From Bugula neritina (lineage: Eukaryota; Animalia; Bryozoa), in contig OZ037769.1 of assembly GCA_964035545.1 (NCBI GenBank), positions 2,232,001 through 2,296,000 of the forward strand: a DNA stretch of 64,000 nucleotides, in the 5' to 3' direction. Made by a program: the position numbers and the translations under genes. This document shows positions 158 through 63,723 of the stretch, piece by piece; positions within the stretch are counted from its first letter, which is position 1, and the number at the start of each line of letters is the position of its first letter. Below the pieces are notes generated by a model. That model was given only the letters and a program-made list of their open reading frames with translations. It was not told where the DNA came from and searched no databases.

Positions 158-3100
158 CTGGTATACTAATCCACTCTTTGGTCCATTAGGATAGAGTACA
201 GGGTCATAACTCAGACTAATACATGTGGAAGATAGAGCTGTTAGTTTAAAGTTTCTTGGTGCTATTTGAGGAGCTACAAAGAGATGGTAGCATAATTGGC
301 TAGATCTGTTTTTAAAGTAAAATTATATTTATTAATAAATCAACAAGACTGAATAAATTGTTAAATTAACTCTTCTCATTAACATAAAATAAAACTCAAC
401 TTTAACTTCGATTATTTTCTAAACCTATGATTGGTGCATCTTATTGTTTGACTTTTTATCAATAATTATTTTCTCTAAATGACAAATACAGTGTTAATAA
501 AATTAAAACAAGCTAAAGTTCGTCTGCTAATAAGAGAACAGAGGCTTTTTACAAGTTTCTCTGGGAACATTTGTATTTCAAAGTTGTCTCCCCTTAGTCG
601 GGCACGCCGTAGTCTCCATGATATATAGAACAAGCACATAAATTCAGTAAAAATTTAAGGTTTGTGTAAAGACTGTTGCTAGTACGAGTTTCATTTTTCT
701 GAGATTAATATTTTGGCATAAGCACACAGATTAATTTTTTTCAAAAATCTTGAGAAAAATTAACTTCAAATCATGTTTGTGGTTTTGGTTACTGCATGTG
801 CAAGCTGAATTGGCATCTATAATTAATATAAATTCCATCAATCATTTGTTATGCTGGCTCTCATGTTCAATTCATAGCTGTTGACCTTTCAACTCTTTGG
901 TCAGAAACTGATATTAACACAGTCTTAGAGCTCTGCTAATGAATGAAACAGCAGATTAGCTGTGTTAGCATTTTCAATTAAATATACTTACACACTTACG
1001 TTATGTGAGTAGCTAGACTATAACCTCAGCATCCATCATTTTCACAAAAAAGCATTCTCATAAAAATATAAGTATAATTATGTTAAATAGACAGAGTAAA
1101 TTTGTAGCATCAAAATGATCTGTGATATAGCATGTGCACTTAACTATACTTTGAAAAGTTTGTGCTACATTATGTTCAAGGGACTGTGAATGCTTTACAT
1201 AGTTTAATGTCAACAGCTATAAATTGAACATGACAGCCAGCATAACAAATGATTGATGGAACTTATATCATAGTTGCCAAATCAGCTTGCTCATGCAGTA
1301 ACCAAAACCACAAACATGCTTTGAAGTTAATTTTTCTCAAAATTTTTAAAGAAAGGAAATTTTTAACTTTTTTCTAGAACTGCTAATCTGCATGTGTGCT
1401 TATGCCAAAATATTGATCTTAGACAAAATGGAACTCGTACTAGCAATAGTCTTCACACAAACCTTAATTTTTTACTAATTTTATGTGTGCTTGTTTTATA
1501 TATCATGGAGACTACAGCTCGCCCATCTCGTAGGAAACAACTTTAAAATACAAATGTCCCCAAAGGGACTTGCGAAAAGCCTCTATTAATTCTTAACTTT
1601 CAATGATATTTTGAATTTTTGAGTATTATTCTTGTTCAACAACAAAAACATTAGTCAAGCTTAGGTTGAAGCTGAACATAATTACACACGGTCATGAATG
1701 TATCAGTATCATAATAAAGTCTTGGTCTGTATGCGTGACTGTTTAGTTTAGTTTATAGAGTTAAAAATATAATAGCTATAAGTGTATCCTATATATCACT
1801 TAATACTCAATAGATAGGTAAACATACGCAGTCCTTGTTGGGTGACAATAGATTTCCTCACAGATTCAGATAAATTTCCATTCCTCTGTATCAACCAGAC
1901 TTCAGCTGATACACCAACATTACCATCTCTGTATATAGTTGTATTAGTAGATGTAGAGCTACTTAGAATTGTCTTATCATCTATATTCAGTTTGTATCTG
2001 TACGATGATTCTGCACAGTTGTATGTAGATGATACCTTAATGAGAGAGAATCAAATATCACTCAGCTGTTGTAAAACAGAAAAAAATTGAACATAAAAAG
2101 AACCTCTATACAGACAAGTGTAACATTTACCTGCCATGCTAGAGTATATTTCCATCTCTTTCTCCCCGAATCAGTTACCATTGTTGGTGAGTTAAACTGT
2201 AGACTTGATGATTGAAATGGATCTGCAAAAAAATGTATTAGCTAGATTAGTTTATTAAATATTTTGCGACCAATTGCCATCATAAATATAGCTACATGAA
2301 AACGCTGATAGTCTTATAAAGTATGTAAACTAATTAAAATAATGTTTATATATGCAATGACTAATAATTATTTCCATTTTAAGTGGCTAATAACATAAAC
2401 TCTTTGAATGATTTAGTGCAAATCTACAGTGATGTAATGATGATGTAAAATTAGGATGATGAAAAAGTTATTCAAATACAGTTAGTTTTAACAGAACATC
2501 TCAAATTTAGCTAAAATAGTGTAAGTCAAACCTATTTAATTGACATTCACTCGACAAGAAGATGCATTAGGGGTAAATTTTGTTATATATACACACAATA
2601 TATGTTAAATCACATTCTTTATCAGCTATATAATATTACACTTTTTCAATCATACCTGTACTCACCCAAATTTACTAAACTATAAGGATAAAACCTAGAA
2701 AATCAAAAAAATTAGAAGAAAAGCCTTGCTCAGTTACCTGTATTAGATAATATTTCATCAGTTTACTGCAAGAAGCAATATGCATTATTGGTTAACCCGT
2801 AAAAAATAGCTAAAAACTAGAGATATATTATATAGTGCATGTACTATAAAACAAGTAAAATGGCCCACTTATAAAAAGTTGACCAATCATCACTATTTCA
2901 AAGTGATATCCAACAACTGTCATTGTTTACAGGACATATTTTTTTATACACTTCATCCAAGAGTATTGTTGCATAATTATAATATAATTGTACATGCATA
3001 ATAATTGAAGTTGGTTACAATTAGGTACCAAAAACTCCTAAAATCCATTATTAAATACAATTAAGTTATTTAGCTGTTTTCAGTTTTTATGTTGTCTATT

Positions 3101-3767
3101 AAACGACTACTGCCTCCATATTTTAGCTCATAAAGCAATAAACTCTTTCAATTTCTTTTTTAATAGTAGAAGAAAGCAAAATATAGTTGGTGGCAGTTTT
3201 ACAAAAACATTACCAGAAGAGGCAAGCAAGGTTTGTATCTAGTTTATGTTTTGTCAAGTTGAACTACTTGGATAGAAATAGGTCTAGCATGACGTATTAT
3301 TTTTAAAAATTACTGAATTTTTATGGGATAAAGCAGTTTTAAATTTATTAATCCATAAGTAGAGTCAACTTACTGTTACAAGTTGTCTCACTGTCTGTTG
3401 CTACTTCGCTGTCTTTATTACCATTAGAGTTACTCTCTCTTCTTGCTCTAATCTCACAGTTTGCCAAAGTGTTTGGTGTAAACTCGCAGACTTGTTTATC
3501 AGATGGTATGTTCTTCCAACCACCAGAGTTACAATTATACTGCAAATTATAACACATTCAAATCTGAAGGATATTGTTTCAGCCATTTGCATTATTATTA
3601 ATTAAGTCAAATACTCACACATGCAGAGTCTGCAATGTTGACTAAAAATTATAAATTGTAAGTTGGCCCGAAGTTTTTATTACTGAACACATCAAATGAT
3701 TTTTACGATTGTCAGTTTTTTGTTCAAAAATTTAGCTAAAGCGTTTTAGCTGAAGTTATATATATAC

Positions 3768-3832
<65 letters not shown>

Positions 3833-5113
3833 TATATTCAAAGAACCAACCAAGACACTGTCCAGGTCATCTAACGCCTTATTTCTTTCTGCATGTATTT
3901 ACATAAGACTAAAAATTTTAGTTAAAAAACCACCTATATTTGCCATAGTTATTTAACTGGTTTACCTGATATACTAGCATACTTTCTGGTCCATTAGGAT
4001 AGAGTACAGGATCATAACTTAGACTAACACAGTATGGAGATACAGCTGTTACTTTAAAGTTTCTTGGTGCTACTTGAGGAGCTAAAACAACATATTTTAA
4101 TTTCGTTAAATTCATTAATGTGCTGAAAGCAACCTGTTTTATTTATTTCTGTAAGAAACATTTTAAAAACATTATTATTAAATTTTAAATACATTTTTCT
4201 CAACCAAATATTATTCAACAGATTGTCAAGAAAATTAATATCTGCAGTATAATCTGAACTGTATAGGAATGTGAGCAAGCAACTTAAAAATAAATTTGTA
4301 ATTTTGCATAACATTGAAATTTTATTTTTAAGCAAATTTTAAAATTGAAACCAAACCAATTATAAAAATTGTCCAGAAAAAATATTTTCAATTAACGTTC
4401 TACTTTTTTAAAAAAATCTACTTTAATAACCTCACGTAGATTTACTGTTGATGTAGTGATAGTCTTGGTAACAACTTCAGAAAGAACTTCATGTTTATTT
4501 CTTAACCAAACTTTTATGGTTAAAAATTCTCCTCCATCTTTGTACAGAGTGGAACTGGTATGTTTGTAGTTCCTTATTACTAAGCCACTGTCAACTTGTA
4601 GTTGGTAAGGATTAGTTGGATGTATGCAGCCATATGTTTCTGGTTCCTGTGAATTTACACAAGACTATGTTAATAATATCGTTCATTTAAAAATTCTTAA
4701 CATTTATGGAAAAAATTGTTGCAAAACGCTTCTATCTTTTCCAAGACTTTGTATTATTTAACCAAAATGACTAACAATTTATTATATAATAATAATTCCT
4801 ATATACGCATATGTTATAGTGTACTGGCATATTGCTTATAGTTGAGCTTCATTTATATTTGGTGTGGAATAATTTTATTGGAGTTGGTAGCTTTGTAATA
4901 CAGTCTATTAATTATGAAGTGTGTTTTAAAAGTTACAACTATAAGTAATAAAAACAATTACCTGCCATGTTGCTGTATACTTCCATCTTTTTCTGTTAGA
5001 ATGTGTAGCTTGACTTGGTTCTCCAAAAGAAAGTTGCTGAGGTTTATCTGGAACTGACAAAATATAAATATTGAAAGATTGAAACTAATATAATATTATA
5101 AACACTAAGTAAA

Positions 5114-5169
<56 letters not shown>

Positions 5170-5347
5170 ATATATATATATATATATATAAATATATAAA
5201 ATAAAATAAAAAAAAACAACTTTAATTTATTAATTTATTCATATAAATACAAAAGTGTAAGACTGTTTTGAATACCGTTGTTTATAATACGAAAGTATAA
5301 TATATTTAATATCCCTGCATAATCAGTTCAAAATATTGCTTAATGTT

Positions 5348-5445
<98 letters not shown>

Positions 5446-8389
5446 CATTAAGCAATATTTTGAACTGATTATGCAGGGATATTAAATATATTATACTTTC
5501 GTATTATAAACAACGGTATTCAAAACAGTCTTACACTTTTGTATTTATATGAATAAATTAATAAATTAAAGTTGTTTCTTTTTTAGTTATTTTTAAATAA
5601 TTAAAATCAGGCTGCGAAAAAGAAAACACTGTGTGGTAGAAATAAAAAAATAATTTATTTAATTTCTATTTCTTATAAGATGCATCTTCCCAACACATAT
5701 TTTTTGTCCTAATTAATAAAAATTGCACTGAATGTTTGTTATTAATGCTCTATAAAACATTTAAAAAAAAACATTCTATTCTGTATAAATATTTAACAAG
5801 TATTTACCAGCAGGACAAGCAGTTGTCACACTATCAGTAGCCACTTCACTTTTTTTGTTATTGTTGGAGTTACTCTCTCTTCTTGCTCTAATCTCACAGT
5901 TTACGAGACTGTTTGGTGTCAACCCACAGACTTGTTTATTAGATGGTATGATCTTCCAACCACCAGAGTTACAATTATACTGCAGAGGTATTGAATCAAA
6001 TGTTATCATTATGCAAACTGAGGTTTTTGGAAGCCCTAATTTGAAACTATGGGTATATTCATAAAAAAGCTTTAAAATTATTTGCCTCCATAACATAAGT
6101 CAACTTCATGATTTTAAACTTTTGCAGCCAACTTAAAACACTTGGAACAATGAGTAAGCAATTAACGCTACTTACTTTCAGTATGTTTACATATATATTA
6201 TCTTGACCTTGTAGTCAAAAAAGCATAGATTTCATCAACCTGTATATAATGCACCTCAATTAACAACACAACAACATAATATACCTACACATACCTGATA
6301 GTTAGCTTCTACATCTGTATATGGATTATCCCAGTCAAGTCTCACACAATCAGATGATATCTGACTCAGTCTCAGGTTTCTTGGTGTAAAATTAGCTAGA
6401 AAGGAACAATTGGAACTTTGTGTAAAAATACTTTCTTAAAATTGTGAGCAAATATACATATTTAGCGGTGTGCTAAAACTTAGAATAAAGAGACATTCTG
6501 ATCAAGTTACTAATGGCAACAATGAAAGTAAACTCAATTTGAAAAGAAAAAGATAATATACTTTGCAAAGAAAATATATATTAAAATATGAAAAAAAATT
6601 GCGCTAATCAAAATCAAGCAGTTTCAAGCAATTCCAAGTCATGTAACAAGTGTGAGTAATAAAAATGGTGAAGCTCATAATAATTATAACTAATCTTTAG
6701 ATGCCGAACAAAATTGTATTTTTCAAGAAGCAATTAATTAACTGTAAGTGCAACGCATGCTCATAACAAGATTTATAGAACTTTTGTTTTGAAGAAGTTA
6801 TTTTGCACTCTCAAAGTATTCATTTTGAACAGTATTTCAAATTTTAAAAATAACATATACGTCTAAAATGAAACTTATTTTCTATACTCATTTAGCTATT
6901 GTCTAATAAAAAATTGATTTTTACTCAACAGACCTAATTCTTGGGTATGCAGAAAGTAGAATAAACCATTTACTCTACCTCTTTTATTTCTCAATTTCAA
7001 ATCTTAGGACATTACTTATAGAATAAATTATTATTGCACTAATAGTTTTTAATTTTACTCATCAAGTCAAAAATTGTTGAAACTTTGTGTTATTTTGATT
7101 GCTAATAATGTTTATAGAGACATGCTCAACAGTTAAGTATATACACTAGCTTTCATCACCTAAAAACAACAATTGACACTTAATTATAACTTTTGCCGCT
7201 AAATAAAACGTGGGGTGGCTAAATAGCCACTGCAGTGGGACACAACAAATACATTGAAACTTTGTTGATTTGGTTGCACCTGATTTTAATTTGATTAATA
7301 CACATAAATAAATAAAAATACTCTTTCAGATCTACAGCAAAAATCATGTTTTAGCTGTACAGTTTGCACCACAACAGATAACAAGGGAGGAAAAATCAAA
7401 CGCACATCACTCATTTCTGTACGGTACCATTTTCATTACTGTTTAGAACTGGAAAAAAAATTTATTTCCGCTTTACAGGAACTTTCATCAACAAAAACTT
7501 CAGTAACATGTACTACAAAATTCTGAGTGGACTTTTTTTCTATGAACTGTAGCTAAGGTGCATGGCTGAGGTTTGTGACTGGAATGTGGAAGGGGAGGAG
7601 CTAGGGAGGAAATGTGTAAATCAGAATTTATTTAAGTCAAATACATGTGTAATCGCTCAATGATATAATGTATAGTGAATATCATGACTATCCATCAGTA
7701 GCAACAGCAGAGTGTTATGTATAATGTATAAAATCACAAAGCTATATAACCCCACGAAATGTATATATATATAGGTCTATTAGGGAGCTTCACCTTGTAG
7801 TTTGGTAGTTTTACCATGATGTTTTTGCTACTTTACAAAAAGGTCAAAAATGGCTCTATTTATAGATTTTATTAACATTTCATCTAGGTAACTTTTGGGC
7901 AAACAAACTAATAACAGTGATCAGAGTGCAAAGATAAGGTGACCCATTGTGCCCCAGTCAGCGTGGCCCATTGTGCCCCCTGTGGCCAAGTTGAAAATAA
8001 ATGTGGCTCAGGGAAAATTTATTTTAGAGTTTGCTGTTATACTAGTTAAGCAATGTAGAGACAAGCAATGGCAACAATATCAGTAAAATCTAGGCTTAAT
8101 TGTTACTTTTGAGTGTAAAAAGTAATAAAGCTTTAACTACATCTTAAAAAGTTAAAAAAAAGTATGTACAAACAGTTTTTGACTCACCTCTTGATGGATG
8201 CCATATTTATAAATAATCTTTCTAATAAAAAAACTAAATGTTCCTTATAAGTATACCCAAAGAATCTCATCTAAACAAGCAACCATAACATAAGTATAAG
8301 TATGACTTACCTCCAGCTGTATTCCCAACCAAGTAGAGTAACAGAAATGCTGCTAGAATAATGCTGTTATAACATTTCAGGGATCTCAT
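158..8389 (-). CDS. Gene 4: FN3-repeat paralog lacking the lectin domain; 3'-partial (continues left of the window)
   Basis: Exons 8311-8389 (MRSLKCYNSIILAAFLLLYLVGNTAG), 6295-6395, 5808-5979, 4962-5053, 4436-4646, 3966-4081, 3374-3539, 2131-2222, 1828-2035, 158-273. All are open and phase-compatible, and homologous to FN3 half-exons of genes 1-3. Confidence 0.82.
540..1584. mobile_element. Foldback/MITE-type element with about 350-bp TIRs (gene 4 intron)
   Basis: 540-885 is the imperfect reverse complement of 1209-1584 (AGAGGCTTTT...AAAAGCCTCT). No ORF; TSD unclear. Confidence 0.8.
5214..5577. repeat. Palindrome: about 140-bp arms around a (TA)n core
   Basis: 5214-5353 is the reverse complement of ~5438-5577, with no mismatch seen; another (TA)n lies at 5116-5197. 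Confidence 0.92.
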
Positions 8390-11300
8390 GATGAAATTAC
8401 GTACTCTTCTCAGAGTAAGTAATATAGTAAGTACGCTGATAAAGCATGCAAGTAGAATTAACTATATAGCAGTTTATTCTTTCTGCAATTTTGTTGATTT
8501 CCGTTATAAAAGGTGTTGATTTAACTTGAAGAAACTTATTTGATTAACATATTCTACTAACTTCCTTTTTGATGTGTCACACACTTAGTTAAGTTTTGTC
8601 AGTTTAATTTGTTCAGTGAATGTATATGACTGTGCTAGTGTTCAGTGCAAACCGTAGTGTATCACAAAGGAACAGATGAAGATGAAAGCTAAGTGAATGC
8701 TAGAGCAAACATTCTTTGAATTAAAAAGAGAGCTATTCTATTCAGGTTCATAAGTTAGCTAACTACATTCAAAAGAGTTTTTCTAAAGTATAATGGAGCT
8801 ATCTTTGCCTTATAATTATGTAGTAGAGTCAATAATAATGAAGTATAGAAAGATGAAAAGAAGAAGTTTGATGTTATGTATGGCAGTGCGTGACAATAAA
8901 GTTTAACTTCTGCCTTGCTATTCAAACATATGAAAAATACTACACTGTATAGTATTTTGAGCTATAGAGATACTCTACAATACAATATCAATCTGAAATG
9001 AGTAATTAAATCAGCATCACCATCTAAAGTTATTCTTTTGCAAAGTACATCCACGGTCAGTGCTAAAGATTTGAATTAGCAGCGTCAAAAAACATTTTAT
9101 ATAAATAGGTTTGATGTTCAACATACGCAAACTGGAAAAGTGAACATTTAATTTTGAAGAGATATGTCTATAACATACCCGAAACCTACAGTTATAAACG
9201 TTACTTTGTTAGCAACTTAACAACAGGGTTTCATATTTGAGAGAGAGCACAATTCCCAATCAACGCACTACAAACATTATGTTACAAGCATATACACATG
9301 CTACTAAACAGATACCTTTTCAGAATTTGTACATGACCTATCCTCTTATTTTTGTTATAAATACCGCAACAAAAAATTACTGCAAAGCACAAGTTTACAG
9401 CTCTTTTTAGTTACCTTATTTTTGAGCAAAGAATACTGTTAATATGTTAATATTATATTATTTATGTAAATAGACATATAAAAATTGAGCAAACAGGAAA
9501 AAATTATGAAAAAGTTAGATTTATGTTATATAAATGAAGATGTTATGTAAAATGTGTTTAGACACACTAAAAAATTTAATGCATTCAAACTTGTGTAAGC
9601 TATGTTTTAGTGCATATAATTATAGATTAAGGTAAATGTAATAATTTTTTAATACTTATAAACCATGGCATTCGTGAGTTAGTTTTAAACTAGTACTATA
9701 AGTTAAAGTAAATATAATAAAATATATTATATACTCCAATGCCATGAGTTTAACATTGGTCTTGCATATTCTGATAAAGATTAGTATCAGGTGAAAGATT
9801 GTGTACAGTACGAACTACTTTCTCATAGTTATGATCCTCAGTTACTGTATTCATACTCTCATATGTTGGTGCTGGATTCTTGTCACCAGAAACCTCTGCA
9901 TATTCTGCTACATCTGTACTTGCTCGTTGTATGCAGCTCAGATCAACCTCTTCAAGGTTATCTCTTCTCTGAGGTTTGGGCTGTGTTTCTCTCTTGGATC
10001 TTAGACTTCTAAGCTGATTGGATCTTCTCAGTATAACAATTATAAGTATTACTATTGTTATAATCAGAACACCAGTGGAAAGTCCAACAGACAACCCAAT
10101 GATGTAACCTAAAACAATCAAGTACAAATAATACTAAATAGTTATGGTGATTAATAAATGAATCTTTGACTTTTATTTGCTGCAGTGTTTTATACAATCC
10201 TCAACCTATTATGTTGTTTATAAATAGCCAAATGTTGTATTAATATTGAGTCATTTGCAGAAAGTATCATTCTAGATGTAGAAGTTGGAGTAATTATAAA
10301 TATCATACTTTAATTTGAAAACACTACCTTACATTTTTTTAATAAAACAAGTTACCAAAATTAAATTTTTTCATGTTATACCTTACTCCTTGCGTCTTTC
10401 ATATTATACTCACAATAATTACTACTATATAGTCTATTTTAAAATTTTAATTGCAAAGTTGCAATAGTGTAGCCACAACTTTTCTTGGTGAAAAGAATTT
10501 GTAAAAGTTTGAAAATTGAGGAAGTTAATAGTCATATCGCCGTATACCTAGCTTTAGACATTCTGGTAATTCTCCCGACCAGTCCACTTCTCCATTATCA
10601 TCACCACAAACTATTTCTGATTGACCAGTAATATACAATCCTTCTTCACAAGAATACAGGGCTGTTGTACCCACACCCCAATCTTTATCTGAACTCAACA
10701 GTCTGGCATTATCTACTAGAGGTGGTGCAGAGCAGTGGCTCTCATCCATACCTACCAATGACAAAAGCAACTTTCTAACCATGACCCACTCTTACAGATT
10801 TGAATTTGTTAGTTTACCATGCACCGTGTTATTGCAATTGTAAAAAACTTTTACTATTATGCTGATAAATATTTCAATATGTAATAATGCATTTTTAGAT
10901 TCTTTGCAAAAGTATATTAAGCCTAAACCATTACAGAGGTTGTACTTGTCTTATCTCAGTTGTACCTATGCATCAGCATGCAGAATGAATTTTATAGAAC
11001 CTTATACTGTTTATAAGAAATAGTGTGAGCACTGATCTCAGCCAATCAGTCCCAGCAATCACTCACTTTTTTCTGCTTTTTCAAAAAGAAGTTGTTATAA
11101 TTTAATTAATAACTTATAATTTAAATAGCCCATTGATAATTAGTACTCCTTCATAAAACAATTTTAAGATTATATTCATTTTCTTCAAAAACTTCTACAA
11201 GAAAAATTAGGAGAAAAATCATTCCATGCATGTTCTTATGGAAAACCCTCAGCTTACCTAAGGAGATTCTGATGGGCTCGTTGAAGTACTCCACAATTTT

Positions 11301-13030
11301 AAAACCATCCTGTAATAATATATATACACCTTATTTTGAATAATACCTACTCAATGGTTTAGCCACTTCAAAACATGCATAAATATGTAAATAAATTGCG
11401 CTATATGTTTACTAAAAAGAACTTTTCTTTTACGTATAAGATCACAATGCTATATTTAGTATCATATCTTTTTTTTATATTATATTAACATATACAAGGA
11501 CTTATGCTGACTGTGTTTACATGCAATACCATAACAACAAGTTTCATAGTTTAAAGCCAATAATTATATGATTTAGCGTGCACCTCAAACTACCATTTTA
11601 ACTCAACAGAATAATGGTATATCTTTGCGAGAGGTTGTGGCATGGCACTGTATATGCTAAAGTGGTAGTTGAATTTGAGCCGTTTAAATTAAGAATAAAA
11701 TAAATTTTTAGGACATTACAAAAAACCAATAATTTCTGATTCTGTCTAGTATTTAGTTTAGACAGATATTTATTTTAGTTATCTATTTGCCAGAAAAATG
11801 TTTCTTTTATGATTGAATGTTTCAATACAAGAGAAATTACAAAACTTTTATTTGCATTTTAAAAGCAACTATTAGCAAGAAATGCAATGATAAGAAGTTA
11901 GTGCGTTGACAATGATTTCTTACACATGCGATAAAGTAAAACCAAAAAAATCTAACAATACCTCCGCCTGTACTGTAACTGCCTGATATATCTTGTAGTC
12001 TTGGTTTGGTTCCAGTGGTGCATTATAATAGTTTTGATATGTCTTTCCATCTCCAACTCTGAAGTCATACCCATCACTATCTACTAGAGAACTGTCAATC
12101 TCTGCTGTTATGTAACAATCTGGGTCAAGGTCACATTCTGGTGGTAGTTGGACAGATGATCTCTTCTTTCTCTTACTTGTTGATGTCTTCTTTTGGACAA
12201 CAAACACGTAGGAACTGCAATAAATAAGTTATCTAGTAGTATGTAGTTACTATACAAGTGAAATACAAAATTAGGTATTGCCTATCTAAGAAGGTAAAGA
12301 TAAAAAAGATAAACAGAATATATCTTTTCAAACAATATATTCTGCCAAATATTTAAAAACTAGGTCTGCGTGGGGTTCATATTTGCCTGATAAATAGCTA
12401 AGCTGTGGCAACCATAATCATTGGCTATCTGGGCATGCAGCTAATAGTGCAGTATTTTATATTATACTAGTCAATACACTATTATATTATATAGAAACTT
12501 ATTTGTGAGATATAATGTAATGACAATGTGTGATATTATGATTGGCTAGGCTTTGTTAATTAGAAATGTAACTCAACTCACTCAGGAATCTTGTTATCCA
12601 GGGTAACTTGATGTAGGGTGATGGTGAAAGACTTCTGAATAGTTTCAGTCAACTTTACTTTGTCACTCTCTCTCACTAAAAGTTATAGGAAAAATACTAT
12701 ACTATACTATGACTGTTTCTCTACATAAATGATGAGTTTCACAAAATTTCTAATAATTATGTATCTGCATTACTTTTATATAGAAATATAACCCCTCTGC
12801 AAAATTATTAACTATAATATATAAACTATATATGCAGTTATGATTATTTCATTTTGTCAAAGAAGTTAAATTAACATACATACCTGCTATTCTAGTGTAT
12901 CCTGTTTGTGAAGTCACTGGACTCTCCCCAGCACTGTTTATAGCCTTAGCACTACATGTCACTTTCTCAGCTGATCTGAATTCACACAGGCTAACTGGTT
13001 GTTTATCTGTTGCTAGGATACTTTGATAGT
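8190..13030. repeat. Segmental duplicate, copy A (copy B at ~20850-25715)
   Basis: Constant offset of about 12,680 bp (8389/21067, 9750/22432, 12884/25568). Introns, 3' flank and intergenic DNA are nearly identical over ~8750-12830. Confidence 0.92.
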
Positions 13031-13973: not shown

Positions 13974-14054
<81 letters not shown>

Positions 14055-22695: not shown

Positions 22696-41477
<18,782 letters not shown>

Positions 41478-41479
41478 GA

Positions 41480-52200: not shown

Positions 52201-55200
52201 CAGCAGAAAAGACTCATTTTAGTATATTCACTAAAAGTAGATTCTTTTAGACTGACTGTTAGCATGCTACTGAAGTATTGTTATTCAACATGAGAGTGTT
52301 GCAATTAAAAAAACTCACTTGAATAAAACTGAAAACAAAAACAGAAACTGTACATGCAAAGTATAAATTTGTCTTTATATTTTGAGCCAATATAATTGCA
52401 TTCGGTAAAAAACAAACTGTATAAAGCAGGCAGGCTTTGATTTTGCATTATCATAAAGAAATTTTAGAAAACATATATTTTCAAACGAATTACATTTGAA
52501 ACTATTCAAGTGAGAACAATTTTTCGTTATTTATTTCGGTAACTAACATTAATATAAAGCTTAAGAATCAACGAAAAAATATCAGAAACTTTATTTTACC
52601 AGTTTTTAGAATAACCGACCCCATAATAAAAATGTGTAGATATCTAATTCTAGCTATGAATAAGGATTATGGTAAGCAAGCAAACACTGGTACTGTTGTT
52701 TATATATACTACACAACTTTATAGATCATCTCTCTTCTTAACTTTACTAAATCTTACAAATTGATTCTTACCTCCCATGTCAAAGCCATTATATGTTTTG
52801 GTTTTGTTAGCTCTTGAGTTACGTATGATGTCTGAACCTCAGGGATAATTGGCACTAAAAACATAGAGTATTTCATGTGTCTAACATGTTAAAAGGTCAA
52901 ATCTCATTATTATCTATCATCCACACAACAAAATAAAATGCACACACAGAGCACACACCAAAGAATGCACACACACACACACACACACACACGCAGCACA
53001 CGCAGCACACGCAGCACACGCAGCACACGCAGCACACGCAGCACACGCAGCACACGCAGCACACGCAGCACACGCAGCACACGCAGCACACGCAGCACAC
53101 GCAGCACACGCAGCACACGCAGCACACGCAGCACACGCAGCACACGCAGCACACGCAGAACATAATGAAATTCTATGTTTATTAATTTTCTTAATTAATT
53201 TTGGTTTTGACGAAAGCTGAAAGTTTCACGAGAACATGACCTAATTTCTTGCATTAAAATTTTAGAGCTAGAACGCAGCCTTTTCCTGATTTTTCTATTA
53301 CTGCCAAATGTATATATACCACCTTTTTCATAACTGTTATAGTTCAATATTACGTTCATGTTTCATGCAGACAGACTTACATCCACAAGTTACTTTGATG
53401 TCTCCTGTAGCCGACGGTCCAAAACCGGCACTTGTCCCTGCTGCAATTTCATACGTAACCAGATCACCAAAATTAAACCCACAGGCTGTGAAATTGTTTA
53501 TTCGTGGAGGCTGGCTCAGTTCTTTCCAACTGGGCACACTTTGATCTTCCTTGTAATACCTATGCTAAAAAAGTAAATTATTATGCCATGAATGGAATCT
53601 AAAAATAGGGCTGGTTTTTATATTTAACCAAGTAAATAGATATTAAGTTTAATTTAGACTTCTGCAAAAAAACATTAGGCTACTTCAAATATTTACAGAT
53701 CCAAATCGATTTTTTATGAGCAACTAGTTAGCTGTATAATATATTACTGCAGTGCTCAACAAAAAATGCTTATACAATATTGAAGCTATAACACAACTTA
53801 AAATAAGGTTTCCGAACCATATCATTAGACAACATATTAACGAAGAGAAAATTTTCTACTCAGCTTGAATTTACTAATTAGCTGTCTATTATTATTTACA
53901 AACTATTCACAATAGAGAGCTTACAATATCTGATGTAAGAGTCAGTTTACCCTGTACTTAGTAATGACTCCATTTGGTTGGTTTGGTTCTTTCCACTCCA
54001 GATATACACATGACGTATTATAAGAAGTACTTTTCACTATCACAGGAGCATCATAAGGTTCTACAACAATATGTTGGTGAAGAGATCTTTTATTTATACA
54101 AACTTTACTCTAAGTATGTCTATTCATATACTTTTACCACAAACTATTTAGTTTATAGCTTTCGCTTTCAAGAATTGTTTAAAACTTTAGTATAGAGCAG
54201 ATAGAATAGTACAATGCCAAAAATTACAAGTATATACAAAAATAACTATATATTATCATATAATATATGGGTTGATCTGCGAGCAAGTTTTTAGTTGTTC
54301 ATATATCAAGTGCTTTAAGAATTAGATAATGGTAGCTTTATGCTGGAATGTGCTTTCATGATAAATCTTTAACATTTAAACTGTTTCAATCTTAACGGCT
54401 ATTACAAGAAATTTTCTAAGCATAGGTCTATGCCAACGTACTATAGAATAGCAATAAGAACATAAACTTACCTAAAGTCATGGTTCTGAAAGTGAAGGAA
54501 GCTGTAGTCTGGTTGTTTGCATTGTTTGTGATTTTTACCTCAATAGTGTAATCAGTAAAAGGGAGTAGATTTAGTATGTATTGTGTACTCAGTATATATT
54601 CTCTATCCTCTTTCAGCTTGTACTTTATATTTGATATACTTTGGCAGTTTGCAACTATGTCCTAAAAATGTATGGAATAAATTGTTTATTGGCTATATGT
54701 TTATTGAAATATATTATAACCCATGAAACTATAATTATTATTTTCTAACTTCTATGCATATCTTTAAAAAGTTTAGATGTTTCAGATTCAAAAGTTTCTA
54801 CTTGTTTTATAAGAGAATTTGATAGAATGCTTGCAAAATAATATGAACTCATGCTTAACTGTAGCTCACTATATAAATAAGTTATGGCATATCTAATACT
54901 TGGTTTTAAAAAAGAACATTAAGCAAAAAGCTACTAAACTGTTGCAGATTTTTAATAAAATATAAACTTGCCATTTTGACAATTCTAATAAAAATAGCAA
55001 CTTTGTGAATAAAGGTATAATGCATAACATATCTTAGATAATTTGTAAAATTTCACTTACATTGATAAGAAGATTAAGATATATGCGAACTTTTACTTTA
55101 CTTTCACCAGCAGGAGTGTATTTATATTGACTTATATAATGTGAGAGGTCAGAGGGAAGAGATGGTGCTGTACGAATATAAATAGAAATACAATTCAGAA

Positions 55201-58200
55201 GTAAGGATATAAGCATACAAATTTATTAAAAAGGTGAATTGCCTGTGAAGATATCATCAAAGTGTAGAGAATTAAACTATAACTGCTTTAATCAAAGTTT
55301 GTACAATATATTTTAGCAAGAGAGTTAGTTTTTACTGGTTCACTTTTTGGATTAGGATGGGTATAGACATTTTTATCAATTGTATTTTTTTTGCTTTCAA
55401 ACAAACAATTGTAATGTTTCAGAATTAAAAAACCTTATATTAGATGCCTTAAAAAACACAAATAATTTGAATTTTTTGCATATAAAATTGATGGACACTG
55501 CTCAATCATACTTATATTTATTTTAAATCAAATTTACATTATGTTACATTATTTTGTAAGAGCATTAGGAAAAAAAATGAAGAGTAATATAATATTATAT
55601 TTTTAAAATATCTATGATGAACTTTAGACTCCCTCTTATGCATTTTGTAAAGTTATTTTATATGTCTATATAAATTAAATGCATATTTTTCAAGAATGTG
55701 ACCCTATGGTTATATTATAGTTTTGTTTCACATGCTGGTTCAACAAGATAATGAGAAGCTATGCTACTCACCTGCACACTGTGTCCTTACACTGACTGCT
55801 CTAGCTGTTTGACTATGCTGTGCTCCTGGAGTGTTAGACACTCGTGTAGCTCTGATGTCACATGACACTAGTTGGTACGGGCTGTATCCACAGGATTTGC
55901 TATTAGAAGGTATGTCATGCCAATCTCTGTTCTCACAACTCATCTATAATATAGCAACTTTAAATGTTTTTTTCGCTTCAAATATTATAAAAAAAAATAA
56001 GACATGCTTCTAATTCATCAATCAACAATTTGACATATTAAACTACTATTTGACGTAATTTAATAGAATGTGTTCTTTTTTTAATCATGAATTACCTGAT
56101 AAACAATCTTATTTACTGGTCCATTAGGATACTCTACAGGATCATAACTTAGACTAACACAGTATGGAGATGCAGCTGTTACTTTAAAGTTTCTTGGTGC
56201 TACTTGAGGAGCTGAAGATAGAAAAAAATATGTTTTTCTATCAAAATGATTCCAATATACTTTGTAGGTAGCCTTATGTCTTGTAAATAGTTGAAGAATG
56301 GCATAGAATATCTTTAACTAGCAGAATAAAGAACTTAAATCTATTGAGTGTTTCAACATAATCTAAGTTCTTTGCTTAAACTTTGTATATAGTAGGTCAA
56401 TAATGAAACTTAGCAGCTATATGGGACTGTTATTTATGAACTTTTGATTAAGAATATAAAATACAGCTATATGTGACCGTAATATAACGTGAAAAAAGAA
56501 CTAATTTCATTGTTACTGATATAAACAGTATATTATTATTGCAAAATGCATGTTTTTATATAATGGGATGCCAATTATAGCTGTTTTTTAAAGACATGTG
56601 TATATTGCAAGATTTAACCTGATTGTCACTTTGCTAAACTAGATATTTAGTTTATTTAAATAAAATTTGATGAAGAGTTTTTTTAAATTCACATTGAATA
56701 AGTTTCAGAACATACCTAAGCCAATAGGTGTTTGGGTGGTATTAGATGCATATGCAAAGTAATTATTGTGCCCTTTTAAGAAGAGAGCTATTCTTAGACT
56801 GACATCTCCGTCAGCATACAGCTTGTAACTTGTGTCTTGTGAACCTGTTAGCTTGTATTCTCTATTAACTAAGAGAGTATATCTTATGTTGGTTCTATCA
56901 CATTGATATGTTGGTAAAATCTAAAGTATGAATACAACCACAGATGTTTAACTATATTTATCTCAGTATAAAATACACATGTAAGATTAAATAACTTATA
57001 GGATACATTTGACATTGATACGTGTTATGTGCAGACTTCAAATGCATTTCGTAGGTCATAAATATTGGCATAAGAAATTATAATACATAATAATTTCCTA
57101 AATAGTAGCTTCCAAATCATATGCAGACAGAAAAGTTTTATTTGGCAACTATAATAAAGATGCATCATAGTAGAAAAGTATCTAGTACATTTACCTGCCA
57201 TGAAACTGTATACTCCCATCTGTTTCTACCCAAGTTGGTTGTGGATCTTGGTGAACCAATCAAAAGACTTGAGCTGTTTAATGGTGCTGTAATGTTATAA
57301 AACTCAAATTTAATTTTTTTTTTCTCGTATTTAATATTTCTTTTGCAAATTGAAATATAAAATATCAGATTATTATTCTAAACAACTATCTAACTTACCT
57401 GTACAAGTGGTAGTGCTGCTTGTAGCTGTATCACTGTTTTGGTTCCCTGCAGAGTTACTCTCTCTTCTTGCTCTAATCACACAGTTCACCGGAGTGTTTG
57501 GTGTAAACCTACAGACCTCTTTAGTAACTGGTATGTTCTCCCAACCACCAGAGTTGCAGTTGTACTAAAACCAAGTTATATCTGTTTATTTATACCTTGA
57601 AATATATTATATTCTTGTAAAATGAATAAATATTGGGGCAGCTTATAATGCAGTAATTACCAGTAATAATTATCATTATTGGTATTAAATATATACTAGA
57701 AAATAGTGTACATTTAGTTTCATATATGTGGTCTGTTTCTTGAGCAACTATTAAAAAATAAGAAACTAATAAAAATATTATTTAAGTTTTTAATGTATTA
57801 CTATTATAAAATGTAAGATATAAAAATATATTACATAAACACTTGTACACTCCAGCAATTACATGAATAATTAAAGTTGCTATATTTTTTTATTTTTCTT
57901 TTTATAAACTTTTCTAGAATAACTTAAAAGGTCTATTGTTTTGCTAAAAAAGTATGGGGTGCTTTAGTTTATTTGTATAGATGATTTGATATAAGATAGT
58001 GTGGTGTTGTGATCCCCCAGTGTTCTCCCTATATATATAGTGTAATTGTTAGTCATAGAGGTTCGATTCCATGGGGCAGTTATTTTATAATATCATACTA
58101 TACAGTTATAAATAATTATAATGTCTATCTATAGTTTTCTGAGAATTCAAAAAATACCATTTAGCATAGAGTTTTAGAGCAGACAAGAAATTGGCACTGT

Positions 58201-61200
58201 CAAGCAAATTAATGTATAGAAATATTTTTTCATTGCAGGCAAAACTTTGTTTAGCTTTGAATCATTGTGAGCTTAGCTAAAGACAACTAGAAAGTTTCCA
58301 ATTTGTTGTTAATTTAGAGAACAGTAGTTATTCACAATATCTATAATTTTTAAAGTAAACTTTAGTTAAAATAAAACTATAGGGCAAAATTTGTATAGTA
58401 TAATTACAATAATTATATCAGAGTAACTAGATAACAGCTGAAAATACAGTCATAGCTGAAACAAGGCTGGAGTTCAAAGTGAGTAAAGTACACAACCAAC
58501 TACCACCTGAGTGTTACCTGGTAAGTAAGTCCATCTGGTGGCCCGTTAGGGTATGACACATCTTCATAGCTCAACTTGACACACTCAGAAGATGCAGCTG
58601 TTAGCTGGAAGTTTTCTGGTGCTGTTTGGGGAGCTGGAAATGCAAAAATGATGAATATTCTAAATATAAGATAGCAATATCATGAGTGTATATTTTAAAT
58701 ATAAATATATTGGTTTTGCTGACTCAAAATTTGTGGCCTGCAAAACTCTTTCTCTTCTATAAAAAATGAGACACAAACAAACAAATTAATTTTTGTTGGG
58801 AGTCTAAGATATTATTAAAAACAATTTTAGAATATCTAAATGCATATTTCATTTAAAGTGAAATAATTAAAATGTATAATAAGAACATAAAACGATAGCT
58901 GCATTTATTTCTGGTGATAAATTTATTATGTTGTAATTTATACATATATTTTTAGTTATTTTCAAGCTAAATAACTTTATTTTTTATTAATCTCAATGCT
59001 GTTATGCATTTTTTTATTTGTATGTTTTATCTCAGGTAGTTTAATAAACATAGTTTATTTATTAGTTACTTTATGACTTCTAACAAATTAGCAGGCCTGA
59101 CATATCCCATTTTAGTAACCGCATAGAAATGCAGTAAATAGCAAAAAAACCAAAGTTATAAAGATGAGTGTTTTGATTGTGAAAATATGTTTAGGTGCCG
59201 TATGTGCAATATGTAAAAGTAGAGTTGGCACAAAAAACACTAATTTATATGTTATACTTTTGTAATTGCCGTTGTAATGCTGAAACTTGAAACAAAACAA
59301 CTCTGCAGAATTTTGCTAAGCAAGTTAAAAAATACCAGAACTTACGTAATTCTCCATTAACCTCTATCTCTGTACTAACTGGTTCAGACAAACTAGAATC
59401 TGTGTCTCTGATTTGTACTATGACGGTAATTGTGTCCCCGATGTCTCCGTAGACAGCGTAGCTAGCTTTATCGTACCAATAACTATTTTTAGAGTCAGCA
59501 GGTGAGTCTGAGGTTGAGCTGACTTCTACTCTGTACGGGTATGAAGGACGCAGACATAATACTGGAGGTAAGACAACCTACAATAGAAACTTTAAATTAT
59601 TTAAAGATGCACAGGCTAATAGTAATAAACAAAATATCTACATTTTTGCAAATAAAATGAAAATCATTCCAAAGCATTCTTTTGTTGCAGGTTTCCTGCA
59701 TTTACCACTGCAGTCCATACAATGCAATAAAATAAGCAGTGTGACCAACAGGGGTTAATAAACTCAACTTAAACATGTAAAAATGACTAACAGAACATGC
59801 TGTGGTATTTGAACATATGTATCTACTCTCTGCATTTAGAGCCATTTATGCTGTTCTGGTTTCATAGTCATTTAAACCTAAAGGGAATTTAGTCAATCAA
59901 AGTGAACCCACAATACAGCTCATGCAGTTGTTCAAACATTTAAAACAAAAAGTAATTGCTAGCTCAAGCTCTTTAACGGCTGCATAAGGTTTGGTTGTAG
60001 GCTTGGGTTGCTTTTCTTTCAAAAGCATAAATTTATGCTGTATATATTTTGTTTATAGCACAGGATTTTTTGCTAATTTTTTCATTTACCTACTTTTTTG
60101 CCTCAATTACCAAAAAGCAGAGTAAAGATTTTTTGAACTTTGATTATTTATAAATTAGTAATTTTTTTCTCATGAGTTTTAAAACCATGTTTGAAGAAGC
60201 TTTGCAAAAGTACATTTTTACTAAAGCATCAGATACCAAATAATAAAGTATATTATTACTAAAGTGTATATCCCTGCATGCACTGTTTCTCTATTGATAA
60301 GTGAAGGCAACTAGCCTTATAGCCTTTGATGCATCAAAGCAGCCTTGCAACCAGGAAAGCAACTTACAAAATATGTAAAACCAATACCTTACTATATAAA
60401 AATGGCAGTCTGATTGGAAACTTAAACCAAAGCATTAGACTGCTCAAACTCAAACTAGCAATCACCCAGCCCATAGTTTTCTATTTTAACTCAGTTTAGG
60501 TTTAAACAATCAAGTTAAATTTTTACCACTATATAGTAATAATTAATTAATACTAATTAATTATTGCCAATTGATTGTTACTAATTAAAATATTATTATC
60601 AGTTGGTTAAATCTGATTGGTTAGTATTACTTTACCATTTTTGATCGGTTGGGACTGATTAAAGAGCTCTAATTGGTTGGTTTTCAGCATATATTCATCA
60701 ACCAGTTTCATGCTATTAATTGGTTAAAATAGCATTAGGTAATGCATAGCTTATATATTATGTAACTTATTTGTTGCACATTTAGTTATTATTACATTTA
60801 TCTTTTTTCATCAGAACTCAAAATAACTTTTTCAAAATTGTGAAACTCAAAATTTTGTTTTAATTTCCAATATAAATGAATTATACTCAAAGGCAAATTG
60901 CACATTTAAGTACAAAATTTAGGTTTCATTTCCAGGTATAGCAGGTATAATGCACTGTGAAGTATAAGATGAACCATAAATATTTTGGCTGTGACAAAAA
61001 ACTGAAAATGTAGTTATTTTCAATTGCATTAATAAAATAAAAGTATCTGAAACCTTTAAAAAGAATTGCTCTAAATTAAAAACTTACACTCCAAGTCACA
61101 GTGTACAGAAGGCGCCATCTTAAGGATTCTAAAACTTTCATCGATGAGCTAGTTGTGAATTGTATTTGAGGTGTTTTGGCAAAATCTATAAGAGAGAAAT

Positions 61201-63723
61201 TTAATTTATATAATTCAAATATTAGATGTTGTAAAGCAGCAGACAATAAATATTCTAATCCAGACTAAATATGTAGCAGAAGACTTTAAGTAATAAAAAG
61301 ACAATTAGTAAAATTTTCAACGCAGGTTTTTTTCAGACCTCCTACATCATATCCTATTATGTAAAAGTGTGAAAAGCAACTATGCATTATGCTAATGTGT
61401 GATATTCTATAAAATCAAAAGAGAAAATTCTTTTAATGCAACTATTTTATGATCAAACTATTGACACCGAATTGTAATTTAATGAAGATTAGGACTAGAA
61501 CTAACCAGAACACTGTAACTGTGCTGATACTGTAGTGACTGTCATGTCCTCTACTCTCACACTGCATGCTGTTGATAAAGTGGGAGATAAACCACAGACT
61601 TCAACAACAGTGTTGGAAGTTGGTGTATACCAGGTTATGCTGTGACATCTATACTGTAAACAGGTCAAAGGTCATTAAACTTGTGTATACTTATATAAAC
61701 AGTATCAGGGCTGGTTATATTATAAATCATATTTCAAATCGAACTCAAATATTAACACTAATTTTGGTTCCGCTTCTATTTTAGTAAAATAAGCTGCTGC
61801 AGTCCATGTTTCAATTGCCACAAAGCTCAAAATTTTGTTTTCTAAATATGTTTTGCTTAAACTGCAATTTAATTGAAAGTGGTTTTGGCAACACCACAAA
61901 AATCAACTATTTGTCAATTTTATAGCAGTAAATAATTGGTGAGGCTTTTATAAAATTAATAATCTAGTCATTTTTTTTAAATTTTCATATTATCATATTT
62001 GAGTAAATTTATAAGAGTAGTAGTGAGTTTTCTAGCAACTGCTGTGATAATCTGATTATCAAACCACATTGGAAATTTTCCTAACAATACAGTTATGTAG
62101 GCAATATTTATTATGAATGCTTTTTAACTAAGCTAGCTGTACATGCACTAACTACCGGACACTAACTTGGTAGGAGGCCCCAATACTTCTGTAGGGAGAG
62201 TCCCAATTAAATGAAACACAGTCTGTGGTTACACTGGTTATCTGTAAGTTGGTTGGTTTAAATTCTGCTGGAGCTGTAAATTAATTAAGAAGTACATGCT
62301 TAATACATGGAACGCAGTAACTGAATCATTTTAATAAAAAATTGCTTCAGTTACTGCAATTTAAAGTTGTCTTCTTTTGTTTTAGATCGTGGACCTTTGA
62401 TGGCATGTTGAGCCTGCTGATATGGCAGGTATCACAGTTTGGTGAGTGGTACTTATCAAACATTTACTTGTAGCAGTTTGGTTATCTGTGGAAATATCAC
62501 ACACATTGAACTGAATATTAGCATCTATTATAGTAATACATTATTTGAATGTCTGCAATGCTAGTCGGTTTAATAAATTATTTTACATGTTTTTGAAGGC
62601 TGCAAAAATTTCGCTATTTGTATTTTTGGCTATACAAATGTTGATAAAAACTAAATTAAGCAAAAATATGATGAAAGACAAATTAATTTTAACATTTTAT
62701 TGTTGATTTGAGCAGTTTAAGTAGAAATTTATTATCTTCATAACTAGCGTGTATACTTTGCTGCGAGAAAGAGCTATAAGCAGCCTACAGTATTTATTAG
62801 GCTAATGCTGGAGTAGGCCTATACATACAAGTTTAGATTTAAACTATATTAAGCAGAATATTTTCATGATCTAAGCAATTAGTTTGCAAAGAAAATAACA
62901 ATATTTCATACATTAAGCTCAAGTTACTTATTTATCTGTAACATGTTTTTTGTTTTCTCTGAAATCCATCAGCTAAAATTCAAAAAGCAAATTTCTACTC
63001 ACTAAATCCATAGACTTCAACCTCTGTAAGGACTAAGCTCTGTCCGTACTCAGGATACAGAGGATTTTTCTTCTCCATAACAGCTACATACTGTGCATAG
63101 ACAGCAGTTGGTAAAAGATATTCATATGTTGAGACTAGTGTAGATACACTCTGAATCACATTCCACTGACTATAGTCATCAGCTGGGTTCAAGTTACCAG
63201 AAGTTTCTTTAGATAATATCTCAAATGGACCAATTTTATTAGCAGCAGACCCTACAGCATATCAATCAACATGCCTCTGTCTGTATAATCTGGTAAATAT
63301 ATGTTGTGAGTGTAATTGAATTATGTTTAAACAGAAATGCCTATATAGTTTGTGAAGTATTAAAATAAATTACGTTATATTTTTTTATTATCAACTGCAA
63401 ACACTTAAGCCCCAACAAAGACTTATCATCTGTGTGTCAAATTATTATGTCTACAAGTACATTTAACTTACCTATGTTATGTAACTTACCAGTGTATATA
63501 TTTATATTTGCAATGAAGAATTGTCCACCCAAGTCTACTCTCCACCATGGATTATCACTTAGAGTAGACAGGAAGCACTGAGTGCAGAACTTTGCTGAAT
63601 TCCATGAGTTGAATGAACCTGATTGGTCTCCATCCACCACTACACTTGGTGAACTACTCCTAGGGTTTTGTCCTGAGGAGGAGGTAGCTTTGTTTAAAGC
63701 TACATTTGATGGTGTGGGAGAAG
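43262..63723 (-). CDS. Gene 1: receptor-type protein tyrosine phosphatase (F-type-lectin-like + 9 FN3-like + membrane-proximal domain + TM + one PTP domain); 5'-partial
   Basis: 35 phase-consistent exons: 63490-63723, 63003-63251 ([30 protein letters not shown]); FN3 half-exons 62167-62273, 61506-61653, 61088-61185, 59346-59577, 58518-58633, 57399-57564, 57195-57286, 56716-56920, 56096-56211, 55772-55943, 55061-55167, 54472-54661, 53951-54060, 53381-53564, 52772-52854, 51833-52058, 50344-50447, 49829-50006; 49309-49408, 48716-48986 ([27 protein letters not shown]), 48460-48508; TM 47835-47931; 47204-47283, 46441-46586; PTP 46198-46285 (KNRY), 45914-45987 (DYINA), 45388-45430 (FIATQG), 45121-45218 (DFWLMIWQ), 44613-44738 (KCERYWP), 44064-44212 (WPDHGVP..LLVHC), 43827-43962 ([12 protein letters not shown]), 43435-43593, 43262-43333 (TAG). 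Signal-peptide exon not found in the window; 3' terminal exon uncertain. Confidence 0.93.
45581..45682. repeat. Short AT-rich tandem repeat built on TAGCTATA (about 17-bp period)
   Basis: Repeated TAGCTATAAATACAATA-like units in a PTP intron. Confidence 0.7.
50880..51820. repeat. 11-bp minisatellite (CAGTAGTAATA)n
   Basis: Tandem CAGTAGTAATA / CAATAGTAATA units; source of the spurious [11 protein letters not shown] ORFs. Confidence 0.95.
52965..53157. repeat. (CA)n followed by the 9-bp repeat (CAGCACACG)n
   Basis: Direct reading; source of the spurious VLR/CCV/STR ORFs. Confidence 0.95.

Follow-up and report, generated by a model that had tools for sequence, protein, structure and literature searches.

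The stretch of bryozoan DNA analysed here (G000:C5:2232001-2296000; all 64,000 nucleotides are called the window) lies in a 216-Mb, AT-rich assembly of about 30% G+C and holds tandem receptor genes, numbered 1 to 4, of a larger cluster. They probably belong to a bryozoan multigene family in which one type of ectodomain is carried either on a receptor-type protein tyrosine phosphatase (PTP) resembling LAR and PTPsigma or on a phosphotyrosine-docking tail, and in which the two ends would give opposing outputs. The structural and evolutionary side of this reading, a shared ectodomain with two kinds of cytoplasmic end, is well supported by the exon order and by the identities among the genes. Within the reach of our searches, the family appears to occur in bryozoans only.

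All coding pieces of the window lie on the minus strand. Exon types were assigned by clustering all minus-strand open frames in the window, in 50 kb to its left and in 30 kb to its right, which gave a consistent exon set arranged as six genes in a row. They are listed below in window coordinates from 5' to 3' (TM, transmembrane helix; D1 and D2, PTP domains).

91706..74738, minus strand: R0, with a lectin-like domain, five FN3-type modules, Fn3_PTPRU, and PTP D1 and D2
63736..43378, minus strand: gene 1, with a lectin-like domain, nine FN3-type modules, Fn3_PTPRU, TM, and D1 only
41477..22432, minus strand: gene 2, with a signal peptide, a lectin-like domain, seven FN3 modules, Fn3_PTPRU, sushi, TM, and a premature stop
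21067..9750, minus strand: gene 3, with a signal peptide, a lectin-like domain, five FN3 modules, Fn3_PTPRU, sushi, TM, and a four-tyrosine tail
8389..-8037, minus strand: gene 4, without a lectin-like domain, with nine FN3 modules, Fn3_PTPRU, sushi, TM, and a five-tyrosine tail
-13381..-44023, minus strand: G5, with a lectin-like domain, 11 FN3-type modules, Fn3_PTPRU, and D1 and D2

A preliminary description of the window had reported tandem genes with homologous ectodomain exons and differing cytoplasmic ends. The exon map bears this out, with 72-98% identity between the ectodomains of R0 and G5 and those of the tail receptors. The FN3 counts given there for genes 1, 2 and 3 (9, 7 and 5) stand, as do the phosphatase in gene 1, the four-tyrosine tail without an enzyme in gene 3 and the lack of a tail in gene 2. 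Counting family members in the flanks, as had been proposed, added two more phosphatases with both D1 and D2, namely R0 on the right and G5 on the left, whose ectodomain exons are of the cluster type; the cluster is larger than first described. The end of gene 4, left as unknown, was resolved as sushi, TM and a five-tyrosine tail to the left of the window, and the restriction of sushi to genes 2 and 3 did not hold, since gene 4 has this domain too. On the whole, the observation made in that description is confirmed and its interpretation is partly supported.

The basis of the domain calls should be noted. Pfam was run on single exons, and most half-FN3 exons are too short for a match alone; the FN3 modules were called from fn3 matches of the Y modules, from whole Bugula neritina and Watersipora proteins, and from the repeated two-exon pattern. 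The calls for the lectin-like domain likewise use half-domain exons and orthologs. The Fn3_PTPRU/PTP_tm exons score 30-39 bits by themselves, above the cut-off, and a furin-type RKKR motif in this exon is kept in all six cluster genes, suggesting a cleavage site at the level of the motif. No exon matched the Ig (immunoglobulin) family in the single-exon Pfam run. The nearest public proteins, at 66-95% identity, are those of the Bugula neritina record GCA_010799875.2, suggesting that the genome of the window is a close relative of that record and not identical to it.

Phosphatase and tyrosine-tail ends

Gene 1 is the sole phosphatase inside the window. Its main features are as follows.

63003..63736, minus strand: lectin-like domain in two exons (lecA about 63490-63700, lecB 63003-63251)
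48719..48986, minus strand: membrane-proximal Fn3_PTPRU/PTP_tm exon with RKKR (PF23144, 30.4 bits, above the cut-off)
43435..46590, minus strand: juxtamembrane and PTP D1 exons (Y_phosphatase matches and tblastn)

The D1 exons match PF00102 (Y_phosphatase) with E values of 1e-11 to 4e-6 and are also recovered in the genome-wide PF00102 scan. The domain is complete, as KNRY, WPD and VHC-STGVGRTG are all present, giving the signature of a classical receptor-type PTP; the catalytic motif is split between VHC and STGVGRTG at 44066/43964. A B. neritina protein named PTPRD (P0168) spans this D1 without a gap in tblastn, and the solved structures closest to the B. neritina phosphatase covering it are those of PTPsigma and LAR D1-D2. 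In the exon map, no D2 exons of gene 1 are found between 43378 and the region upstream of gene 2, whereas R0 and G5 have a linker and D2. The ectodomain consists of nine two-exon FN3-type modules behind the lectin-like domain, and the signal-peptide exon lies to the right of the window. Gene 1 is an old paralogue and the most divergent one (dS, the synonymous distance, above 1; 37-58% amino acid identity to the other members), and it has a one-to-one ortholog in B. neritina with 74-95% identity per exon.

Several repeats lie in and around gene 1. An 11-nt minisatellite of about 85 copies (unit AGTAGTAATAC) occupies 50880-51820 in an intron and yields long spurious open frames, and a 9-nt array of 21 copies lies 1 kb beyond it (52972-53162). 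Between gene 1 and R0, two copies of an element of about 270 nt (64564-64833 and 70184-70453) are located 5.6 kb apart, and their translations are near-identical in three frames.

The N-terminal domain, described before as an F-type lectin, is no more than FTP-like. The lectin exon of gene 1 matches PF22633 (F5/8-C_2/FTP-like) with 25.5 bits and an E value of 2e-5 against a cut-off of 27.8 bits, and PF00754 with an E value of 1e-3; that of gene 2, a single half-domain exon, reaches 15.1 bits for PF22633. The core W[WI]R[VI]DL is kept in the domain (WWRVDL in gene 1), and the UniRef name of the B. neritina gene 1 ortholog, EB796_005865, is FTP domain protein. However, a regular-expression search of the joined lectin exons of five genes gave no match to the fucose-binding motif H-x(24)-R-x-D-x(4)-R/K and none to RGDCC. 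The domain is called lectin-like here.

The receptors of the other class, genes 2 to 4, end in a sushi-TM-tail module. Genes 2 and 3 are built of common exon types, and the corresponding exons at their 3' ends are as follows.

10548..10751, minus strand: sushi exon of gene 3 (PF00084, 36.5 bits, cut-off 20.7)
23230-23433, minus strand: sushi exon copy of gene 2, counterpart of that in gene 3
9750..10108, minus strand: TM/tail exon of gene 3, with YAEV, YESM, YEKV and YQNM in its translation
22432-22790, minus strand: TM/tail exon copy of gene 2, counterpart of that in gene 3
22696..22698, minus strand: TAG stop of gene 2, CAG in gene 3, five codons past the TM helix

The gene 2 model thus terminates as ...ILRRSN, the cause being a single CAG>TAG change. 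Over the 270 nt past the stop, the alignment with gene 3 still shows 99% identity, suggesting that the nonsense change is very recent, and gene 2 need not be an evolved decoy; its tail-less form may simply be a null allele. Of the set of phosphatase, phospho-substrate and decoy proposed in the preliminary description, the phosphatase and tyrosine-tail members are present, but the decoy comes down to this one recent change. An intron of gene 2 (4232 nt in the model) holds a repeat-element insertion of roughly 3.5 kb at 29500-33100, outside the coding model, which is richer in G+C (0.34-0.39); its several open reading frames (ORFs) of 60-117 aa on both strands have no Pfam match. Fragments related to this insertion lie in the first intron of G5, about 14-18 kb left of the window. 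Short units are also repeated in tandem at the last D1 exon of G5, in the intron around it (within G000:C5:2182001-2192000, at a distance of about 40.5-41.4 kb from the left border of the window). At least 10 overlapping frame pieces of this array translate like the start of that exon (EQYVFLHCV...); this minisatellite seems to have been seeded from exon sequence.

Gene 4 extends across the left border. Its 5' two thirds occupy 1..8389 of the window on the minus strand, with the signal-peptide exon at 8311-8389, and no remnant of a lectin domain is found in 6435-8311. The Fn3_PTPRU, sushi and TM/tail exons are found beyond this border, at 6-8 kb from the window, sushi and tail being located at G000:C5:2223964-2224808. 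The tail has five tyrosines, with DEYEDI as an extra motif compared with gene 3.

Besides the TM/tail exons of genes 2, 3 and 4, the genome has one more close copy at C5:8.57 Mb, which makes four in all. The public search with this exon, which covered proteins of 70-222 aa, gave 16 further tails with 56-84% identity. Three of these are B. neritina proteins, and one is a 211-aa model uniting sushi, TM and tail. In an alignment of 17 tails, EYAEV, PTYESM, HNYEKV and LYQNM are nearly invariant and a fifth motif, DEYEEV, occurs in most, while the TM-proximal part is variable. Many distinct tail variants are also found in metagenome data. Among vertebrate SH2 specificities, YE[ED][VI] corresponds to Src-type, YxxM to PI3K-type and YxN to Grb2-type docking, and the tail motifs may be read as docking sites of these three types.

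No ITAM or ITIM (immunoreceptor tyrosine-based activation or inhibition motif) matched in six tails, searched with the expressions Yxx[IL]x(6-9)Yxx[LI] and [ILVS]xYxx[IVL], and the TM helices of the tail receptors contain no charged residue. The comparison with KIR and SIRP made in the preliminary description therefore holds for the related, clustered ectodomains with different ends, but a pair of the KIR/SIRP type in the strict sense is not supported by these sequences.

Shared ectodomains and recurrence of the pairing

Gene models were obtained in silico by linking the conserved cores of the exons via GT-AG sites of matching phase, and for genes 2, 3 and 4 a compatible GT-AG pair exists at each junction. 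The models of gene 3 (18 exons, 988 aa) and gene 4 (24 exons, 1235 aa) have no internal stop, and that of gene 2 has 22 exons and 1097 aa up to its stop. The domain borders are in phase 1 and the intron within each FN3 module is in phase 0, so that modules can be lost, gained or recombined with the frame intact. Gene 3 corresponds to gene 2 minus one X-F block, and gene 4 has a chimeric first FN3 module and has lost the lectin domain.

The ratios of nonsynonymous to synonymous substitution rates (dN/dS), calculated among paralogues by the Nei-Gojobori method on exon cores, are as follows.

Fn3_PTPRU (membrane-proximal) domain: 0.10-0.34
C-terminal FN3 modules: 0.20-0.34
N-terminal FN3 modules: 0.42-0.72
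Lectin-like domain: 0.45-0.95

Purifying selection acts across all domains, since dN/dS is below 1 in each of them, and the values rise in a gradient toward the membrane-distal lectin domain. Genes 3 and 4 were rejected as pseudogenes on account of their intact ORFs and dN/dS values below 1.

The ectodomain exons of the phosphatases R0 and G5 are close to those of tail genes 2-4 (dS 0.09-0.29; 72-98% amino acid identity per domain). The Fn3_PTPRU exon is 93-98% identical among these five genes, and FN3 exon cores are 80-95% identical among paralogues. Within the window, self-BLAST revealed one homogenised block.

8190..13485 versus 20851-26183: homogenised 5.3-kb block, 96% identical

Besides the 3' parts of genes 3 and 2 with introns, the block takes in the intergenic stretch and the signal-peptide exon of the gene that follows. 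The identity of the two genes falls to 78-87% in their 5' halves, where their exon numbers also differ. This mosaic of identities points to gene conversion or unequal crossing-over, the 5.3-kb block having probably been homogenised recently, and agrees with the recombining cluster suggested in the preliminary description. Genes 2 and 3 each have their own upstream region and signal-peptide exon. Tails as alternative 3' ends of one gene were judged unlikely, because a separate signal-peptide exon and upstream block belong to each of the genes.

The alternation of phosphatase and tail recurs elsewhere in the genome. In the PF00102 scan, PTP exons were matched at least 153 times, in tandem arrays of large size, and a search with a tail profile gave about 40 tail exons, most of them in two arrays on contig C1. 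The C1 unit consists of two PAN domains, a 209-aa exon, FN3 modules, Fn3_PTPRU with SRKKRS, sushi (PF00084, 28.6 bits), TM and a tail with YEEV, YEKV and YxN. Counterparts of its PAN and Fn3_PTPRU exons, 69-93% identical, are present in a receptor-phosphatase array at C1:3.95-4.23 Mb. Compared exon by exon, the whole ectodomain of the C1 tail and phosphatase genes is 78-91% identical and then continues into either sushi-TM-tail or D1-D2. Between the C5 and C1 families, by contrast, the sushi, tail and phosphatase modules are 30-55% identical (sushi and tail 30-38%). These values suggest that the cytoplasmic modules are old, while the ectodomains have been shared between both receptor classes recently and separately in each array. 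The C5 window would thus represent a second ectodomain class with the phosphatase-or-tail pairing, beside the PAN class on C1.

Further loci show variations of this arrangement. At C5:8.50-8.57 Mb, a tail gene comes after a gene 1-type phosphatase, an order also seen in the window, and the lectin exon of this phosphatase is about as far from that of gene 2 as the gene 1 exon is. The tail gene (G000:C5:8542939-8568790, plus strand) has 11 FN3-type modules, and its last FN3 exon leads directly to the TM/tail exon, without an Fn3_PTPRU or sushi exon. Weak tail-like exons (E 1e-6 to 5e-5) lie within or beside phosphatase arrays at G000:C3:8.06-8.09 Mb and G000:C5:0.47-0.51 Mb, and the pairing may extend to further ectodomain classes there.

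Related arrangements are found in other bryozoan data. In B. neritina contigs, a tail gene is followed by a lectin-bearing gene, and a tail exon by a phosphatase gene; the contigs show the gene order of the window and include the gene 1 ortholog. A RefSeq protein of Watersipora subatra combines FN3, Fn3_PTPRU, sushi, TM and a tyrosine tail with other motifs, and a homology search with this Fn3_PTPRU-sushi-tail protein returned Watersipora proteins only. Outside bryozoans, the Fn3_PTPRU/PTP_tm domain occurs in non-phosphatase proteins (SRCR, CUB and tyrosinase fusions), and no protein with the whole architecture was found in searches of limited reach, the tail search being confined to the protein lengths given above. 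Several tandem PTP_tm/Fn3_PTPRU domains are present in the uncharacterised amphibian proteins P0020, P0066 and P0076 (Ranitomeya, Aquarana). The exon profile matched P0020 (3320 aa) in 14 stretches, and P0066 and P0076 have 3-4 PTP_tm repeats with no phosphatase domain among their Pfam matches.

Possible function and known receptor systems

The phosphatases of the cluster are similar to the type IIa receptor PTPs (LAR, PTPsigma and PTPdelta), whose D1-D2 are the best matches among solved structures. The similarity includes D1 with KNRY, WPD and HC(X5)R, an inactive-looking D2 in R0 and G5, and FN3 modules followed by a putative furin-type site, RKKR, in the membrane-proximal Fn3_PTPRU/PTP_tm domain. 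Unlike type IIa receptors, the cluster genes have an N-terminal FTP-lectin-like domain in place of Ig domains, and gene 1 has lost the D2 of the tandem D1-D2. The cluster family is also massively tandem-expanded and has its ectodomain in common with non-phosphatase receptors.

Vertebrate innate immunity is characterised by paired receptors, in which one ectodomain serves opposing outputs. The cluster resembles KIR, SIRP, Siglec and CEACAM in its clustered paralogues, in near-identical ectodomains with differing and perhaps opposing cytoplasmic ends, in the signs of gene conversion or unequal crossing-over, and in a truncated member (gene 2). It differs in the lack of ITIM, ITAM and a charged TM residue and in its domains, which are FN3, lectin-like and sushi and not Ig. 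The presumed inhibitory arm would be a phosphatase fused to the receptor, not an ITIM recruiting SHP phosphatases. The closest relatives in organisation are the PAN arrays on C1, which share the C-terminal order of Fn3_PTPRU (RKKR), sushi, TM and tail (YEEV, YEKV, YxN) and the use of one ectodomain on either a tail or D1-D2. They differ in having PAN domains where the C5 genes have the FTP-lectin-like domain and more FN3 modules, in the far larger size of the C1 family, and in cytoplasmic modules that are 30-55% identical to those on C5.

The Alr genes of Hydractinia, likewise a colonial invertebrate, form a large family of type-I receptors arranged in tandem, with pseudogenes and variable domain numbers (PMC9546547). 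Its members have tyrosine motifs in their tails and an Fn3-like membrane-proximal fold, together with V-set and I-set Ig-like domains; some carry a canonical ITAM or ITIM, and no phosphatase members are described in that paper (PMC9546547). The role of Alr1 and Alr2 in allorecognition is genetically proven, whereas the cluster is known from its genes alone.

Taking these observations together, we consider that two classes of opposing receptors for a common ligand are the most economical functional reading of the sequences. The family probably arose through tandem duplication combined with exon shuffling, gene conversion and unequal crossing-over. Its common ectodomain has an FTP-lectin-like domain, followed by FN3 modules in varying number and by Fn3_PTPRU with the putative furin site. 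This ectodomain is joined either to the LAR/PTPsigma-like phosphatase (gene 1, R0 and G5) or to the sushi-TM module with conserved phosphotyrosine docking sites (genes 2-4). Both classes may bind one ligand, perhaps a glycan. Src-type kinases would phosphorylate the tail and thereby recruit SH2 proteins, and a co-clustered phosphatase paralogue would strip the phosphates from the tail or reset the kinases, so that both classes together set a signalling threshold. Gene 2, as it stands in the present assembly, would contribute a tail-less variant, probably null or a decoy.

Some points weigh against this scheme. Co-expression, a common ligand, and phosphorylation and dephosphorylation of the tail are inferences from sequence, the gene models are in silico predictions only, and the assignment of the docking motifs is carried over from vertebrate SH2 domains. 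Gene 1, the sole phosphatase inside the window, is also the most divergent member, and the flanking phosphatases would make better partners for the tail receptors. Since receptor phosphatases are also able to activate Src kinases, the effect of the phosphatase on tail signalling could have either sign.

A bolder version, which we put forward tentatively and regard as unlikely, places the family in bryozoan recognition of non-self, whether allogeneic or pathogenic, on a principle that would have no described counterpart. Each ectodomain class would then comprise both an activating tail receptor and an inhibitory receptor with a fused phosphatase, gene conversion would keep their ectodomains alike, and the fused phosphatase would replace the ITIM-SHP relay. 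The classes concerned may be FTP-lectin/FN3 here and PAN/FN3 on C1, with further ones perhaps on C3 and near C5 0.5 Mb.

Alternatively, the phosphatases could serve developmental or neural adhesion and signalling as members of the LAR family, with the tail receptors as modulators and the expansion being neutral or tied to colony and zooid development. The proximity of the phosphatase domains to PTPsigma and LAR, the furin-site Fn3_PTPRU domain typical of adhesion-type receptor phosphatases, purifying selection throughout, and the gene order conserved in B. neritina are consistent with such a role. However, the number of PTP exon matches (at least 153) and of tail exons (about 40) is far above what a conserved toolkit needs, and domain numbers change rapidly between neighbours; we regard this explanation, too, as improbable.

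The preliminary description had proposed a candidate immune or allorecognition system. In such a system, polymorphic ectodomains would discriminate non-self, with the phosphatase members inhibitory, the tail members activating and the decoy blocking. The support for it is circumstantial: the host is colonial, the cluster varies in structure, its distal domain evolves faster, and its sushi and lectin-like modules also occur in other recognition receptors. The variation comprises FN3 numbers of 5, 7, 9 and 11, the loss of the lectin domain in gene 4 and of Fn3_PTPRU and sushi at C5:8.54 Mb, and the numerous tail variants in metagenome data; dN/dS climbs toward the lectin domain to a maximum of 0.95. 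The literature that we found describes no molecular self/non-self or allorecognition locus for bryozoans, and no receptor-phosphatase expansions or such pairs in them; the B. neritina genome paper mentions just weak Alr1-like similarities. Contrarily, no domain has a dN/dS above 1, the FN3 exon cores of paralogues are 80-95% identical, and gene 1 has a one-to-one ortholog in B. neritina at 80-95% identity. The tails lack ITAM and ITIM, the lectin-like domain lacks the fucose-binding motif, and the Ig-like domains of Hydractinia Alr (PMC9546547) are missing. Strictly taken, the family matches neither the known paired immune receptors nor Alr-type determinants, and an immune system of this kind is quite unlikely.

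It is very improbable that segmental duplication left genes 2-4 behind as young pseudogenes without function, or that two haplotypes, misassembled in tandem, account for genes 2 and 3. The premature stop, the 96% identity of the 3' 5.3 kb of gene 2 to gene 3 and the repeat element in the gene 2 intron would fit. However, the ORFs of gene 3 (18 exons) and gene 4 (24 exons) are complete and their splice sites canonical, dN/dS stays well below 1, and the tail motifs are kept between species and anciently diverged families. Genes 2 and 3 also differ in their 5' halves (exon number, 78-87% identity), and each has an upstream region and a signal-peptide exon of its own.

If the reading of two opposing receptor classes is right, the inhibitory arm in this invertebrate would be the receptor phosphatase itself, a different solution to the problem that vertebrates solve with paired receptors. 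The phosphatase arm has 72-98% ectodomain identity to the tail receptor, and the arrangement occurs in at least two unrelated ectodomain classes. The family also illustrates cleanly how exons are shuffled in nature at phase-1 domain borders and how concerted evolution can be confined to ectodomains. Were its role developmental, it would still be a notable lineage-specific expansion of LAR-like phosphatases. For bryozoans, a colonial phylum, the family offers concrete candidate genes for recognition.

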